Origin: Piromyces finnis finn | Taxonomy: Eukaryota; Fungi; Neocallimastigomycota | DNA length: 64,000 bases | Assembly: GCA_002104945.1 (NCBI GenBank) | Contig: MCFH01000019.1 | Coordinates: forward strand, 793,074-857,073 | Reading direction: 5' to 3' | Part shown: one piece after another, positions 2,092-30,176 of the stretch | Position numbering within the stretch: position 1 is the stretch's first letter | Layout of the letters: each line of letters begins with the position of its first letter | Notes under the pieces: generated by a model | Databases searched by the model: none | Told to the model about the DNA's origin: nothing | What the model saw: only the letters and a program-made list of their open reading frames with translations | Program-made: the position numbers and the translations under genes

Positions 2092-2100
2092 ACACGTGAT
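2092..2100. promoter_or_regulatory. E-box CACGTG (RTCACGTG on the minus strand) in the ~395-bp divergent POP/MCM9 promoter
   Basis: ACACGTGAT at 2092-2100 lies in a rare GC-containing patch between two head-to-head start codons. It matches the bHLH (Cbf1/USF-type) consensus. Function is inferred only. Confidence 0.3.
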
Positions 2101-2247
2101 GCAGATGTGCCATATTTAAATTTTAAATTTTATCAATTTTAAAATTCTATTTTTTTAAAAAAAAAAAAAGAAATTGAAAGTTTGAAATTTAGAATGAAAT
2201 TTTTAATTAATTCATATATTTAGATAAATCTCAATATAATATAAAAA

Positions 2248-3676
2248 ATGGTACTAAACTATGATCCCACAAAAAATAATGATTATAAGAAAGCATTTTG
2301 TACTGAATTAATTGAATTAAAGTATAATGAAATTGAAGAAATATTATTTGCTAAAGATGAATCCATATATTACCCATTAATAATAACGTAATTAAAATTA
2401 GAGAAAAAAAAGAATATAATTTAAATAAATAGAAATATAAACAAATTGAATATATAATGTTTTTTTATAAATATAAAAAAATATTATAATAACAATAATT
2501 ATAATTTGTAAAATATAATTATATATTTTATTAGATATTATGAATTACACAATGGAAATAGTTTATTAGGTAAAATTGCTAAGTATAATTAATAACTATG
2601 TGAATAATATTTATAATGATAGTTTATATAATAAAATTAATATAAAATTAATTATTTTAGGTAATCTATTACTTCATTTCCCAGAAACTATGCTTCAATT
2701 ATTTAATGAGGCTTTAATTGAAGTTCAAGTAATTATTAATTTATATAGATATTTCAAAATTTCATTGAAATAAAAATTATTATTTTTATCTTTTAGTTTT
2801 AATAATATAAATTATTATTAAATTTAATTTTTATATATCATCATTATTAAGAATGATATTATTACAAGACATCCAATGGCTGGGGATATGACAAGGAAAT
2901 ATAATTGTAGAGTAAGAATTGCCAGGTAAAATAAATTTCATTTTAAATTTCAAAATTAAAATTTTAAATTTCAAAATTAATTAATTACTGAAAATAAAAT
3001 AATAAATACCATTAAATAATAAATATTAATTCATATATATTTTAATTTATATTATGTTTATTCTTATTATTAAACAAATAATATGAAAAAATAATTTATT
3101 ATTATTTATCAATTTTTAAATTATTATATATATTTTTATACAAAATAAAATTTTTATAGACTTCCAAGTGCATTATGTTATAGAACTTTACCCCGTTCCC
3201 TCGAGACTGGTATGTTTTTATCTATATCAGGAACGGTAGTTAGAACAGGTCCTAGAAAAGTATCAGAACAAGAACAAATATATCAATGTACAAAATGCAA
3301 AGGACAATTTGCTATGAAAGCTGACCGTGAACAATATTATTGTATTCCAGAACCAAAAGCTTGTAAAGCAATAGGTGTAGTTCCTTGTGACTCTATGAAA
3401 TTTAAAAAAATATCTAGTGATCAAGGTATAATAATAATAATATAACAAAATTATTATTATTATTATTGTTATTGTTGTATATATAAAAACATGATTTATA
3501 AATATTTTAAATACTAATTATTTTCTTATTATAATTATAAATAAATAGCGAGTTCAGAAACTTGTAATGATTTTCAAGAAATTAAAATTCAAGAAGATAT
3601 TAATGCATTAGCATTTGGAAGAATATCCTTTTTATATAATAATTAAGTTTTATTATAAAAAATAAAAATTATTCAT

Positions 3677-3710
<34 letters not shown>

Positions 3711-5735
3711 TTTAAATTATAGTTATTACCTTAATTATAAAAATTATAATTGAAATATATACATTCCCCGGTCAATTATAGTGCTATGCGAAGATGATTT
3801 AGTTGATCAATGTGCAGCTGGCGATGCTGTTGAAATTTCGTAAATAATTAAATTAATAATTATCATTATTAAAATGTGTTTCATATTATTGATATTAAAA
3901 TAATTTTCTATAAATTAATAATTTATCAATAGTGGAATAATATTAAGAAGATGGAAACCATTTGAAAAGGGTCAAAGATGTGATATTGAAATCGTTATAT
4001 GGGCTAACTATATATACGTAAAAAATGAAGATCGTTTCTTTGATACTAATGTTGAAGATGAAAAAAGAAAAGAATTTGAAAAATTTTGGGAACATTATAA
4101 AGACAATATTATGGCAGGTAAAGACTTTTTAAAAAGCGATAGAGTAAAAATATAAATAATTAATAAAGATATTTAATTTTATTAAATAATGTATTAAAAT
4201 ATAATAATATTATTAATATTAATAGGAAGAAATAGAATTATATCAAGTTTTTGTCCATTCATATATGGTGCATATCCAATTAAATTGTCAATTATCTTAA
4301 TGCTTTTAGGCGGTGTGGCAAAGGCTGAAGCCGGTATTAAAGTAAGAGGTGAAATTCATATATTATTAGTAGGTGACCCAGGTAAAATATATATTAACAT
4401 TAATGCGTTATTTATTGAAATTATGAATTATCACAAAATGTTTAATAAATTAACTTTTATTATTATAATAATTAAATAGGTACTGGTAAATCTCAATTTC
4501 TTCGGTATGCAGCAAAATTATCACCAAGAGCAGTATTAACAACAGGTGTTGGTACAACTAATGCTGGTTTAACAGTAACTGCTGTAAAAGATTCAGGAGA
4601 ATGGCATTTAGAAGCAGGTGCTTTAGTATTAGCTGATCGGGGTATTTGTTGTATTGATGAATTTGGAGGTATCAAAGAGAATGATAAAACAGCAATTCAT
4701 GAAGCAATGGAACAACAGGTAAATAACAACACTAATTTATTTTTAATAATTAAAAACCAAAATAATAAATAAGGAAATGTGTTTAATGAATATAATTATT
4801 TAATAATTAAATATAATTTTATTGTTATAATAATAATAAAGACCCTTAGTGTAGCAAAAGCAGGTTTAATTTGTAAACTAAATACGAGATGTTCTATTTT
4901 GGCAGCAACAAATCCAAAAGGAAAATATGATCCGGAGCAAAATGTTTCAATAAATATTGCATTAGGTAGTCCTTTACTTAGTAGATTTGATATTGTATTT
5001 ATTTTACTCGATAAACAAGATAAGGAGTGGGACAAGTAATTATTATAATTTATTATTATTTCTTTTTCTTTGTATTAACTCAAAAATAAAATAATTAAAA
5101 TTTATCTATATATATATATATATGGAATTCATTTAAATATATTAATAATTTTTTTTTTTTTTTAATTTTCAATAAAATAGAAAAGTATCAAGTTTTGTAA
5201 TTAAAGAAAATTCTTTGAAAAATAGAAAGAAAGCATATATATCATCACAAAGTAAAAAAGAGTTTAATTCTAATTTAATAACGGATTATTGGAAAATTGA
5301 AGATTTACAAGCATATATTCTTTGCGCTAAAACATTTTCTCCAAAAATGACAAGAGAAGCTCAATTAGTACTCTCAAGATATTATCAATTGCAAAGACAA
5401 TCAGATATAAGAAATGCAGCAAGAACAACTGTAATCCTTTTTTATATAAGAAATAATGATTTAACATTAATTATAAATATATATATTAACATTCTTATAA
5501 CTTTTATTGTTTAAATATTTCCAAAAAGATTCGTCTATTGGAAAGTTTAATCCGTTTATCTCAAGCTCATGTAAATTCATTTTTAATATAAATTATGTTA
5601 CTTAATTATTCATTTATTAATATTATAAATATATGTTTTTGTATATAATAATTAATATTAGGCAAAATTAATGTTTAGAGATTTAGTTATTGTACAGGAT
5701 GCTGTAAGTACTCAATATTCAACAATTATAATAAC

Positions 5736-5783
<48 letters not shown>

Positions 5784-7018
5784 TTTTAATTAGATTGTTG
5801 TAATCTCAATTATTGAAATTTCAATGCAATCCTCCTCTATTTTTGGTGATGTATTATGTACTCTTCACTCAATATTTCCGGATGATCCAATGAGAGATTA
5901 TTATGAAAAAGGTATGAAAAATAATCAATTATATAATTATTATATTAGTATTTTATATTAATACGCTATTTTTTTAATTTGCAGAGAAAATAATTTTAGA
6001 TAAACTACAACTCAGTGATTTATATAGTGGACCTGATATTGAGATTAAACCAGAAATGTATGGAGGTTCACCAAATATAAAACAAACTCTTTATCAAACC
6101 CAGCTTCAGGCTAAACATTTTTCACCAAGTTCATCGCAAACCTCTAACAATGGAGAAAATAATACTTCACTAAGATCAATTAACAACAATGACAATAATA
6201 ATATTGACATTACTACCACCGTCGCTAATAATAATAAAAAAGATAACAAAGAAGATGTTAGTAATAAAAATGAGAAAAATGATATAGAATCTGAAGAAAT
6301 CGTAAAGAAAAACAATGAAGTACGAAAAAACCCGGAAAAGGGTAAAAAGATAGAAACTAATAATAAGCCTCCAAAGAAAAGATCTAAAAAATCTAAGAAA
6401 AAATATTCTAATTCTATGGAGGATAACGAAAATGATTCTTCCATAGATGATTATAATAATGATAATTGGGAAGATGAATTAGAAAATTCAAGCTTTTTAT
6501 TGTCTTCATATGACTCAGAAAAAAAATCAGCAGGAGAAAAATCTATTCAAAATTCACAAAATTCTATTCTTTCATCATTGAATGTTAACGTTAATAATAA
6601 TTCGAGTGAAAAATCAGAAACATCAGAAACATCAAATAAGTCATCATCAAATAATGATAAGAATGATAAGAAATTAAATATAACAATGAGTCAGAAATTT
6701 TCAAGTAAGTTAAAAAGCTTTATGTACACTAAAAAATCTAATACTACTTCCTCTTCAACTTCAGAGGAATCCAAACCACCTTTATTAAATGAAGTATCAA
6801 ATCTATCTGAAAAGGTAATATCCAGTTCTAGTAATTATAATGTTAATAATAACAAGTTATATAACGATACTAGTGATACTAGTGATAATGATCAAAACTC
6901 GGATGAATTAGAAAATGAGGATGAAGACATTAATGATTTAGAGTTAGACTATGATTTTGAACCGACAGATACAATGGATTCTATCAATAAGAAAAAAAGA
7001 AAATTTATATGGGATTAA
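2248..7018 (+). CDS. MCM9: DNA helicase MCM9, 16 exons
   Basis: N-terminus MVLNYDP...YYPLII...[19 protein letters not shown]. Zn finger CTKC...[12 protein letters not shown] box [65 protein letters not shown]. Also [17 protein letters not shown] and [17 protein letters not shown]. The long low-complexity tail ends KKKRKFIWD. The TAVKDSGEW and AATNPKG motifs match MCM9 rather than MCM2-8. Confidence 0.92.
3623..3762 (+). other. U12-type (minor spliceosome) AT-AC intron, MCM9 intron 6
   Basis: Donor ATATCCTTTTT at 3623, branch-like TACCTTAAT at 3727-3735, acceptor TAC at 3760-3762. Removing it joins ...ALAFGR to [15 protein letters not shown] in frame. Read-through hits TAA before any GT. Confidence 0.9.
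5736..5783 (+). repeat. (AAT)n microsatellite in MCM9 intron 14
   Basis: About 16 consecutive AAT units. Confidence 0.9.
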
Positions 7019-7687
7019 AAAAATCAACTCTTAATATTTATTATTATAATTATTATTTTTTTTTATATTATTATTTTTACTAATATTATTTAACAATATT
7101 CATCTATTAAGAGATCATTTAGAAAAATATTTATTAAATACATTGAAGATTTCTTAAAAACATTCAATATATGTATTTATATAATATATTTATATACCAA
7201 GATTTTATTAATTTTATTTTATTTTTTTTTTTAGAATGATACCAATTATTAAAAATTTTTTCTTAATCTTATTCCTAAAAAAAAAAAAATAATAATAATT
7301 TGTGTAACTTGAAAAGACATCCACAATTTATTAAAGAAATATAAATAAAGTTTTTTATTTTTATATATCGGAGTTTTTAGCTTTATGACATTTTTATTTT
7401 ATAACTTCAATATTTATATTGTCTATTGAAATTTTTTTTTTTTTGCTAAAAAAAATACTTTATTTTTATACATTTATAGTATTAATAATATATTTAGCAT
7501 ATTATACATGTATAATTGTATTTAATTTTAATAATAATAAATTATTGTACAAAAAATTATCGAAATCTAGAGATTTAAATATAAAGATATAAAAAAAAAA
7601 AAAAAGATTACAATATTTATAATAAAAATTAATTAAAAAAAAATAATAAAAGAAGAAAAAATTATAATAAAATCGTTGTAATAGAAA

Positions 7688-7947
7688 ATGAATTTAGGTA
7701 AAATACAAAATAAAAGAATTATAAGTCTGAAAAGGCCACAAAGTCAACAAGTTCTGAATCCAGAACTTGAAGTTTTTTCTAGACAAATGAGAGCTAGAAA
7801 TAATTATCAACCATCTGGAAATCATAAAAAGTATTAATAGTTATAATTATAAATAATGTTAATTTTAGATTGTTCAATTATTTATTATTATATAATATCT
7901 AATTTCTTTTTTTAAAAAAAATATCTATAATTTAATATTAATGTATT

Positions 7948-10975: not shown

Positions 10976-13900
10976 TTAATTTTCACTCTTCAAGCTTTGA
11001 ATACTTCTCTTTCTTCTAATAGAATCAGCTAAATCCTTAATTCTAAATTTAATATCAGTTCTACTACGACCAACGTAGTTTGATATTTCAATCCATCTAT
11101 CCATTGGATTTTCCTTGAATTGTGTAGTTGGGAATTTTAAGAGGGCTTCTTCTAATTTTGTTTGTTGTTCTGGAGTCCATGGCTTTAATGATATTCCAGA
11201 TGGACAACGTCTTAAACTTTTAGTTTGTTCAATAGTTTCGACTTCAACCTTTTCTTCTGAAGATGGTGATTCAATAATTTCAGTTTGTTCTTCACTACTT
11301 TCTTCTATTTCAGTCTTATCTTCATTAACTTCTTCAGAAACATCAGCTTTTTCAATGACTTCAGTTTTATCTTCATTAACTTCTTCAATAGCTTCAGTCT
11401 TTTCTTTTATTTCTTCAATAATACCATATGATTCTTCACCGGTTAAACGTTGATTAGCGGTTAATGGTAAATCAACATTAACTTCATCACCATATATTGA
11501 CTTAACATTGAACATCTTCGTTTTAGTATCAATTTTTGGGACATAACCATAAATTGGTTTAACCTTGTACATTCCACGAATTTCTACAGGAGTTTCTTCA
11601 ATTTCAGCAACTGGAGTTTCAATTGCTTCTTTCTTAACTGGTTCTTCATTGGTTTCAGCTGGAGTTTCAACTGATTCCTTCTTAACTGGTTCTTCAGATT
11701 TTTCATTATCTTCTTGTTCCTTTGCCTTCTTAGCAGCCTTCTTAGCAGCCTTTTCAGCCTTTCTTTCAGCTTTAGTCTTCTTTTTATCATCACCAAATGA
11801 AATAGTTAATTCTTCTTTTTGTTCTTCTTTCTTTTCTTCTTCCTTCTTTTCTTCTCTTAATTTTCTACTTGATTTCTTTGAACGAAGTTTACCCATAGAA
11901 ATTTTCTTCTTTAAAATATCCTTAATACGTTTAGCATTTTCTTCTTCAATTTTCTTAACTTCCTTTAAGATTTCTTCCTTTGGTTTAACTGGTTCTTGTG
12001 GTTTTTTTTCTTCTTTCTTTTCAACCTTCTTTTCTTCCTTCTTTTCTTCCTTTGGCTTGGAAGCTTCTAATCTAGCCTTTGACTTCTTCTTCTTAATTTT
12101 CTTACTCTTTTTAGTTTCTGGTTTAGCTTCTACTGGAGCTTCTTCTTTCTTTTGTTCTTCAATAACTACAGTTTTTTCTTCAACTGGTGCTATTTCTTCC
12201 TTTTTATCTTCTTCGATTTCTTTTACAGTTTCTTCAGCTGTTAATGGTAAATCAACATTTATATTATCACCATAAATAGATTTTACAGAATACATTTTAG
12301 TCTTTGTATCAATATCAGGAATAACTCCATATATTGATTTAATTTTATACATACCACCATTAACATTATTGACTTCTTCCTTAACTTCTTCAGTTGGTGT
12401 AACTTCTTCAGCAACGATTGGTTCTTCAGCTGGAGTTTCTTCCTTAATTTCTTCAACAGCTGGTTGTTCAACTGGAACATCAACTTCCTTATTTTCTTCA
12501 ATACTTACTTGTTCTTCAACTGGGGCAACTTCTTCCTTGATTTCTTCAAGGATTTTTGGTTCTTCTACTGGGGCAACAACTTCCTCAGTAGTAGCAGAAT
12601 CTTCAGTTGGGGCAGCAATTTCTTCCTTTATTTCAGTAGTTTCTTCAGTAATTGGAGAGGTTTCATCAACATTAACCTTAAGTTCTTCAGAACTGTTCTT
12701 CTTCTTAGACTTCTTCTTCTTCTTGTTCTTCTTCTTAGATGAAGTAGCTGGAGCATTTTGTTCCTTTTCTTTTTCTAATTCTCTTTCTCTTTCTTCTTCT
12801 TCTTCAGAATCATATTCCTTTCTTATAATTTTCTTTTTAGTTCTTCTCATACCACCAATTCTAGAAATTGATGGTAATTTCTTTAACATTTTAGTAACTT
12901 CTGGTTTTTTAACTTCTGGTTCCTTCTTTTCTTCTACAACTTCAACCTTTTCAACTTCTGGTTCTTTTTTTTCTTCTTTAATTTCTTCAACAACTTCTTT
13001 TTTAACTTCTTCTTTTTCTTCTTCAACTGGAGCCATAGTAGCTAATTCAGCAGCATATTTTTCACCTTCGTTTAAGTGATCTTCATTGAAATAAGTAGAT
13101 GCAGCTTCCCATCCATTTTCGCTAGCTCTGAGTAAGTAAACACGGTATGCTGTTAAATTATCAGCATCCATTTGTGAAATATATTCATCTAATTTCTTTA
13201 ATTGACTTTCAATTTGTTCTGCACTAGCTGGGGTAGCTGGGTCAATTAAGTAATTATTATCCTTAAAAAATATTTATAAATATTAATATGGTGTTATTAT
13301 TTTTTATATTTATATATTTATTGATTTTATAAAAATTATAAATATACTATTTCACAAAGAGTTAATATTTATATAAAAAACATACTTGTAAGAATTTCTT
13401 TAAAGTTTTCTTTTCCTTACGAATAACTCTCTTTTTCATTTCCTTTTCTTTCTTTTCTCTAGCAATTCTTTCTTTTTCTTCAAGGATAGCATTTTCTTTG
13501 GCCTTTTCTTCTTCTTCCTTTCTCTGTTATATATATTACATATTTTTATATTTTATTGTTAAATATTTCATTATTACCCTCTTATATGTATACTTTTTTC
13601 AAAAATAATAATTTAATTATGCTATATAATAAATATTATTAATATTACTCTCTTTTCTTCTTCAGCAGCAGCAATTTGAGCAGCTCTCTTTTCTAAACGC
13701 TTAGCTTCCTTAGCTTCACGATCAGCCTTTTTGTAAAGTGCTAATCTTGGATCAGTTCTTACAGCTAAATCTATATATATTAAGAATTTTTATTTTATTT
13801 ATTAGTGCTGTCTTCCATATAATATATTTCAAATATTAAAAATAGCTAATATGGTTATTATGAGTTTACCAATTAAATTAATAATTCTTTGATTATCTTC

Positions 13901-28640: not shown

Positions 28641-30176
28641 ATGAGATTTTTAAATACTTTAGCTTTCATTAGTTTAGCCATTGTTGGTTCAAAGGCTATG
28701 AGAGATATTTCTTCCAAGGAATTAGTAAAGGACATTAAAATTGGTTGGAATTTAGGTAATACTTTAGATGCCCATTGTCTCGAATTCTTAGATTATTCTG
28801 AAGATCAAACTGCTTCTGAAACATGTTGGTTAAATCCAAGAGCTACTCAAGAACTTTTTGATAAATTAAGTGAAGTTGGTTTTAATACCTTCCGTATTCC
28901 AACAACTTGGACTGGTCATTTTGGCGAAGGACCAGAATACAAAATTGACGAAGCCTGGATGAAAAGAGTTCATGAAGTTGTTCAATATGCAATCAATACC
29001 GGTGGTTATGCCATTTTAAATGTTCATCATGAAGATTGGAATTATGCCTTTTCCGATAATTTAGCATCTGCTGAAGTTATCCTGGAAGCAATCTGGAAAC
29101 AAATTGCAGCAGAATTTGAAGAATTTGATGAACATTTAATTTTCGAAGGAATGAACGAACCAAGAAAAGTAAATACTGATGTTGAATGGAATGGAGGAGA
29201 TGAAGAAGGATGGGAATTTGTTAATGAAATGAATGATCTTTTCATGAAAACAGTACGTGTTTCAGGAGGAAATAATAAACTTCGTCATCTTATGATTCCA
29301 ACTTATGCGGCAGCACTTAATGAACATACTCTTGAAGCCTATCACTACCCAAATAATGATGATAAGGTGATTGTTTCTGTTCATTCCTACACTCCATATA
29401 ACTTTGCATTAGCTACCGATGACACCGCTGTTTCAGTATTTAATAATACACAACCAATTGAATGGGCAATGAATAACATTAATACGTACTTTAGAAGCAA
29501 AGATATTCCGGTTATTATTGGAGAATTTGGAGCAATGAGTCGTAATAATGATGAGGATCGTATGAGATGGGCAGAATTATTTGTTAGTAGTGCTAAATCA
29601 ATGGGAGTTCCATGTATTTTATGGGATAATGGAGTATTTGAAGGTGAAGGAGAACGTTTTGGTATTATTGATCGTTCACAACTTACTATTACTTATCCAT
29701 TATATCTTAAAGGATTAATGGCAGGTATTGGTAAAAATATTAATATTTCCGATTTAGAAGTAACACCAATTACTCCAACTACCACAATTCCAAGTATAAT
29801 TGAAACACCAACTATTGATACACCACCAGTTATTGACACTCCAGTTGTTCCACCAGTTAATCCACCAACTATTGAAACTCCACCAGTTATTGACACTCCA
29901 GTTGTTCCACCAGTTAATCCACCAACTATTGAAACCCCACCAGTTATTGACACTCCAGTTGTTCCACCAGTTAATCCACCAACTATTGAAACCCCACCAG
30001 TTATTGATAATGCTACTAACAGCGAAGATTATCTTTCATGTGCCAAAGATGATTATTCATGTAAATCCCAAAAATCCGAAGAATGTTATAAAAAGGTTTC
30101 AGAATGTTGGAATTCTCAACAAGATCAAAATGCATGTATCAGTTTAGGCAATACATGTGGTAAAATATGGAATTAA
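28641..30176 (+). CDS. Secreted GH5 (subfamily 4-like) endoglucanase, with P/T/V-rich linker and an unidentified C-terminal 6-Cys module; intronless
   Basis: Signal peptide, IGWNLGNTLDA, FRIPTTW, LNVHHE, acid/base FEGMNEPR, SVHSYTPY, nucleophile IIGEFG, WDNG. The N-terminus resembles rumen-fungal CelB/CelE-type cellulases. Confidence 0.95.
   Translation: MRFLNTLAFISLAIVGSKAMRDISSKELVKDIKIGWNLGNTLDAHCLEFLDYSEDQTASETCWLNPRATQELFDKLSEVGFNTFRIPTTWTGHFGEGPEYKIDEAWMKRVHEVVQYAINTGGYAILNVHHEDWNYAFSDNLASAEVILEAIWKQIAAEFEEFDEHLIFEGMNEPRKVNTDVEWNGGDEEGWEFVNEMNDLFMKTVRVSGGNNKLRHLMIPTYAAALNEHTLEAYHYPNNDDKVIVSVHSYTPYNFALATDDTAVSVFNNTQPIEWAMNNINTYFRSKDIPVIIGEFGAMSRNNDEDRMRWAELFVSSAKSMGVPCILWDNGVFEGEGERFGIIDRSQLTITYPLYLKGLMAGIGKNINISDLEVTPITPTTTIPSIIETPTIDTPPVIDTPVVPPVNPPTIETPPVIDTPVVPPVNPPTIETPPVIDTPVVPPVNPPTIETPPVIDNATNSEDYLSCAKDDYSCKSQKSEECYKKVSECWNSQQDQNACISLGNTCGKIWN
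29808..30008 (+). repeat. 57-bp coding tandem repeat (19 aa, PTIETPPVIDTPVVPPVNP) x3.5
   Basis: The 57-nt period is visible directly: three full copies plus a 30-nt partial, nearly identical at DNA level. Confidence 0.95.

Follow-up and report, generated by a model that had tools for sequence, protein, structure and literature searches.

The sixth intron of an MCM9 gene of the anaerobic gut fungus Piromyces finnis, at positions 3623-3762 of the DNA analysed, is with a probability of about 0.93 a genuine U12-dependent AT-AC intron, most simply of ancestral origin and an ordinary substrate of the minor spliceosome reported from this clade; its motifs predict dependence on U11, U12, U4atac and U6atac. 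The stretch of DNA considered here (the window) comprises the last 64,000 nucleotides of the 857,073-bp contig MCFH01000019.1 in assembly GCA_002104945.1; adding 793,073 to a window position gives the contig position, which puts MCM9 at about 795,321-800,091. The G+C content of the window is near 18% throughout, in line with its origin from an anaerobic gut fungus, and it also contains a single-exon GH5 gene at 28641-30173 that matches this contig verbatim. The features of the MCM9 gene and of its AT-AC intron are as follows.

2248-7018, + strand: MCM9 orthologue as assigned from its sequence, with 16 exons, 15 introns and a 2994-nt coding sequence for 997 aa
3549-3622, + strand: exon 6 of MCM9 (RNA joints, translation and junction-peptide alignment)
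3623-3762, + strand: probable U12-type AT-AC intron of 140 nt, phase 0 (RNA joint and sequence)
3623-3631, + strand: 5' splice site ATATCCTTT, matching the U12 consensus RTATCCTTT at 9 of 9 positions and identical in three orthologous introns
3678-3707, + strand: A30 tract inside the intron, of low complexity and not conserved in Anaeromyces robustus
3727-3735, + strand: putative branch-site motif TACCTTAAT (U12 consensus TTCCTTRAY), aligning to TTACTTTAAC of A. robustus
3736-3759, + strand: spacer from branch motif to 3' site, including a 16-nt insertion relative to A. robustus
3760-3762, + strand: 3' splice site TAC (sequence and RNA joint)
3763-3839, + strand: exon 7 of MCM9 (RNA joints, translation and junction-peptide alignment)

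The gene model was built from the joints seen in RNA contigs together with two GT-AG introns placed in repeat stretches (5036-5180 and 5704-5793), and its spliced translation gives one open reading frame from the ATG at 2248 to the stop codon at 7016-7018. The AT-AC intron is intron 6, in phase 0 after R219, and translation of the model yielded an uninterrupted 997-aa frame only when 3622 was joined to 3763. A long (ATA)n microsatellite lies inside intron 14, at 5735-5780. Several comparisons bear on the identity of the protein. Its exons carry the Pfam domains MCM_OB, MCM (the P-loop AAA+ domain) and MCM_lid; for the Walker (AAA+) exon the bit score is 135.6 with human MCM9 and 86.4 with the best MCM2; and an alignment of the spliced product with human MCM9 over 657 aa shows 50% identity. 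A 51-aa peptide spanning the junction of exons 6 and 7 aligned without gaps to the MCM9 structures 7W7P, 7YOX, 7DPD, 7WI7 and 8S91 with E of about 1e-12, with the junction (marked by a slash) falling at AFGR/IPRS in the window protein and at SVGS/IPRS in the structures, and this peptide distinguishes MCM9 (E 1e-12) from MCM8 (8e-4). When the cDNA of a related gut fungus was used as query, the top named database matches were all MCM9, from fungi and from animals. Judged by these alignments, the gene is an MCM9 orthologue, in the MCM8/9 branch, having an OB fold, a P-loop AAA+ domain and a lid, and being closest to MCM9 among MCM2 to MCM9.

Evidence for splicing came from the assembled contigs of four public runs, of one organism and three studies, for which the RNA label was a guess ("RNA?"). 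The four runs contain about half of the words sampled from 2600-6600, as expected for exons only, and contigs that lack the introns can only come from spliced RNA, despite the guessed label. With the contigs of these runs aligned on 2100-7200, a joint from 3622 to 3763 that skips 140 nt with ends AT..AC was found in contigs of all four runs, whereas the remaining 12 joints listed for MCM9 are GT..AG in every case; one contig of 3062 nt spans 2184-7014. The position of the joint is ambiguous by two letters because AT follows both sides, and AT..AC is the sole reading that matches a known intron class. It was also found that a JGI metatranscriptome cDNA from a related gut fungus, Ga0307465_101997, represents a full-length spliced MCM9 that is 77% identical to the window protein and has the same AFGR/IPRS junction. 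Intron 6 is thus precisely removed in vivo between 3622 and 3763, and the junction that the initial annotation had proposed for checking in RNA is the one that the four runs contain.

That there is no intron at this position, the 140-nt skip being instead an assembly artefact, a template switch of the reverse transcriptase where two letters (AT) are shared as microhomology, or a strain deletion, is exceedingly improbable. Such an origin would be in keeping with the fit of AT to both sides of the joint and with the nature of the evidence, which consists of assembled contigs and not of raw reads. However, the same joint recurs in four runs from three studies, the related species' cDNA and the public A. 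robustus model have the same junction, the protein is gap-free against MCM9 across it, and the reading frame, if left unspliced, meets an in-frame TAA at 3644-3646. Conventional splice sites were likewise considered. The initial annotation had stated that no GT-AG solution avoids this TAA, which is not literally so, as eight in-frame GT-AG pairs exist (donors 3552 and 3564, acceptors inside exon 7); all eight delete a conserved OB-fold motif, the segment QEIKIQE...IPRS, and none of the eight is present in the RNA. Two further joins occur among the contigs of this gene. Contigs of three of the four runs continue from 6466 at the earlier position 2480, a single G separating the two, and one contig of the fourth run joins 2771 to 4200 with ends AA..AA; both joins are probably chimeras formed through A/T-rich words, with a back-splice as another possible origin.

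The letters around the joint agree with the initial annotation in each particular, namely the end of exon 6, the donor, the branch core about 28 nt from the end of the intron, and the TAC that precedes exon 7. Exon 6 ends at 3622 with ...GCATTTGGAAGA, the intron begins (3623-3633) with ATATCCTTTTT, and exon 7 starts at 3763 with ATTCCCCGG. In the branch-site motif TACCTTAAT the CCTTAA core is intact, with the branch A presumed from the motif to be at 3733 or 3734. The stretch separating the branch motif from the 3' site that is used (3761-3762) has neither AG nor AC, and the last 27 nt of the intron are A-rich (TTATAAAAATTATAATTGAAATATATAC), a polypyrimidine tract being absent. The other 14 donors of MCM9 belong to GT-AG introns and mostly start with GTAA, unlike the donor of intron 6. 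How often such motifs arise in DNA of this composition was assessed by counting. Over both strands (128 kb), ATATCCTTT occurs 6 times and the loose branch motif [ACT]CCTTRAY 20 times, and the window holds 13 RTATCCTT sites against 8 expected; a U12-like architecture, with a branch motif followed at plausible spacing by YAC or YAG, is found at one of these 13, which is intron 6. The other 12 sites were rejected as lacking this architecture, the best-looking (at 11916) being antisense to a minus-strand coding region. On these counts, the arrangement of motifs in intron 6 is more than chance. One further intron of MCM9 was evaluated as a degenerate U12 GT-AG intron: intron 12 (5431-5528) starts with GTAATCCTTTTT, and TTCTTATAAC lies 28 nt before the intron ends. 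The orthologous intron starts with GTAATAATG in A. robustus and with GTAATAACG in Borealophlyctis, and Paraphysoderma lacks one, so that intron 12 was assigned to the U2 type and its resemblance to U12 introns to chance.

Genomic MCM9 loci of ten named relatives were compared with that of the window, making eleven genes in all. Three of the ten relatives have, at the same phase-0 site before IPRS, an AT-AC intron that starts with ATATCCTTT and contains a U12-like branch motif.

Anaeromyces robustus (Neocallimastigomycota), MCFG01000040.1 (locus L002), 2327-2438: intron of 112 nt, starting ATATCCTTTTTT, with branch motif TTACTTTAAC 11 nt from the TAC end
Borealophlyctis nickersoniae (Chytridiomycota), locus L003, 1852-1924: intron of 73 nt, with branch motif TTCCTTAAC 15 nt from the 3' end
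Paraphysoderma sedebokerense (Blastocladiomycota), locus L004, 1955-2031: intron of 77 nt, with branch motif ACCTTAAC 14 nt from the 3' end

The A. robustus intron interrupts the same codon boundary, AFGR/IPRS, with the same donor and AT-AC ends and a homologous branch motif, and the only blocks conserved between the two gut-fungus introns are the donor, the branch motif and the 3' end. The motif TACCTTAAT of the window differs from TTCCTTAAC at two positions. In the genomic MCM9 loci of Batrachochytrium salamandrivorans, Nowakowskiella, Obelidium, Podochytrium, Dipsacomyces and the mollusc Elysia, an intron at this site is absent. The MCM9 of the pigeon Columba livia also has none at the GS/IPR site; a GT-AG intron does follow ...IKIQEQ in this gene (locus L005, about 5604-7700), 8 codons upstream of the place occupied by the fungal U12 intron, and, though nearby, the two are not one intron. 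Seven of the eleven sampled MCM9 genes are thus without the U12 intron at this position, and intron 6 is most simply interpreted, from this distribution, as a U12 intron that zoosporic fungi inherited from an ancestor and lost repeatedly. Its presence in a chytrid and in a blastoclad as well shows that it is old. The initial annotation had raised the question of whether the position is of U12 type in other MCM9 genes, and the answer differs among species: it is in A. robustus, Borealophlyctis and Paraphysoderma, and the seven other genes lack the intron. Its central claim, a U12-type AT-AC intron in MCM9, is borne out by the motifs, the RNA junction, the homology of the protein across that junction, and the orthologous introns in three phyla.

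A few AT-AC introns with U2-like donors are removed by the major spliceosome, and AT-AC termini by themselves do not establish the U12 type (Sheth et al. 2006). The branch motif of intron 6 is, moreover, further from the 3' end than is usual in U12 introns, and it may be asked whether this intron also is of the U2 type. Such an assignment is very unlikely. Intron 6 shares with U2-type AT-AC introns only the terminal dinucleotides; those introns have a U2-like donor and are without a U12 branch motif (Sheth et al. 2006), whereas intron 6 has both a U12 donor, matching the consensus at 9 of 9 positions and differing from the 14 GT-AG donors of the same gene, and a CCTTAA branch motif. The donor and branch motif are, in addition, conserved between the gut-fungus introns and recur in two other phyla. 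The preferred assignment to the U12 class also agrees with the known U12 AT-AC introns of animals, plants and early-diverging fungi, which intron 6 resembles in its AT-AC termini, its donor ATATCCTTT, its CCTTAA motif near the 3' end, the lack of a polypyrimidine tract, its occurrence as a lone intron among many of the GT-AG class, and the conservation of its position across phyla. It differs from usual U12 introns in being extremely A/T-rich, with the A30 tract, and in having the branch motif 27-28 nt from the 3' end where 8-20 nt is usual.

If intron 6 is spliced as its motifs predict, the U11/U12 di-snRNP would recognise the donor and the branch site together, with U11 pairing to ATATCCTTT and U12 to the CCTTAA branch motif. 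[quoted passage not shown] Recognition by the di-snRNP, the exchange of U11 for U6atac and the branching steps are those of the established U12 splicing pathway. Motifs, RNA junction, homology, orthologous introns and the literature together support the presence of a working minor spliceosome in P. finnis, as the initial annotation had supposed.

The long branch-to-3' spacing is the sole mildly unusual feature of intron 6. The distance is 27-28 nt in the window intron and 11-15 nt in the three orthologues, and the greater length arises from the 16-nt insertion relative to A. robustus, in which an intron of 112 nt (140 nt in the window) has its branch motif 11 nt from the end. Sheth et al. (2006) accepted U12 branch motifs located 8-30 nt from the 3' end, with 8-14 nt as the usual location, and noted that earlier schemes demanded 10-20 nt; intron 6 is within the former range and outside the latter. 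The 3' site used is the same as in A. robustus although the insertion shifted the branch motif from about 11 to 28 nt. It may be, as a tentative and somewhat doubtful extension of these findings, that the minor spliceosome of P. finnis tolerates long branch-to-3' distances and, in introns poor in G and C, takes the first AC or AG downstream. If true generally, this would amount to a lineage-specific relaxation of a constraint considered tight in animals, and the spacing offers a small lead for the study of how the minor spliceosome chooses its 3' sites.

U12 introns are reported to be slow to splice in some animal systems, and the initial annotation had suggested that slow splicing may limit expression of this helicase. 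A real U12 intron that is in addition a rate-limiting, regulated step for MCM9 expression appears unlikely. Besides the precedent in animals, the long branch-to-3' spacing could reduce efficiency and would fit such a role, but seven of the eleven sampled MCM9 genes manage without the intron, and assembled contigs drop minor variants and so give no retention rate.

The initial annotation overrated how new the finding is. Minor introns and minor snRNAs in Neocallimastigomycetes, with Piromyces finnis named, were already reported by Larue & Roy 2023 (PMC10639083), and minor snRNAs had earlier been reported in chytrids and zygomycetes by Lopez et al. 2008 (PMC2396436). The minor introns of Larue & Roy are of the same clade, species and intron class as intron 6; the text available from that paper (PMC10639083) is without a per-gene description, and a single intron is documented here with its RNA junctions and orthologues. 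As the minor spliceosome of Neocallimastigomycetes, P. finnis included, is known from the literature, the MCM9 intron changes no open question; it adds one more confirmed and RNA-verified case of minor splicing to those from the clade of this anaerobic gut fungus. In the literature, the tie of MCM9 to minor splicing is limited to Mcm9 intron retention in Zrsr2-mutant mice, the gene not being called a minor-intron gene. No minor snRNA and no U11/U12-specific protein was found within the 64-kb window itself; an Rfam search of the window at gathering and E-value thresholds returned no snRNA, its sole match being a chance Thr_leader.

The consequences for annotation of MCM9 are suggestive. A public MCM9 model from the P. 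finnis genome was not found among protein-database models of 189-1660 aa. In Piromyces sp. E2, PIROE2DRAFT_13135, annotated as a "hypothetical protein" of 405 aa and lacking any Pfam domain, is 61% identical over its full length to the C-terminal tail exon of the window MCM9; it is the closest named homologue of the tail and probably stems from an incomplete gene model of MCM9. The missing P. finnis model and the E2 fragment hint at mis-annotation, possibly from the AT-AC intron or from another cause, and serve as a warning that predictors restricted to GT-AG can lose genes like MCM9. The public A. robustus model (928 aa) has the AT-AC junction correct; its first residue corresponds to residue 69 in the window protein, about 68 N-terminal residues being missing, and its N-terminus is probably truncated. 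In Dipsacomyces acuminosporus, the OB-fold segment ...CADYQEIKIQEQVGRLALGTIPRAIVV... is present twice in one MCM9 model, about 875 nt apart (locus L006, at 1146 and 2021), which is due to a tandem duplication within the gene or else to an error of the assembly.
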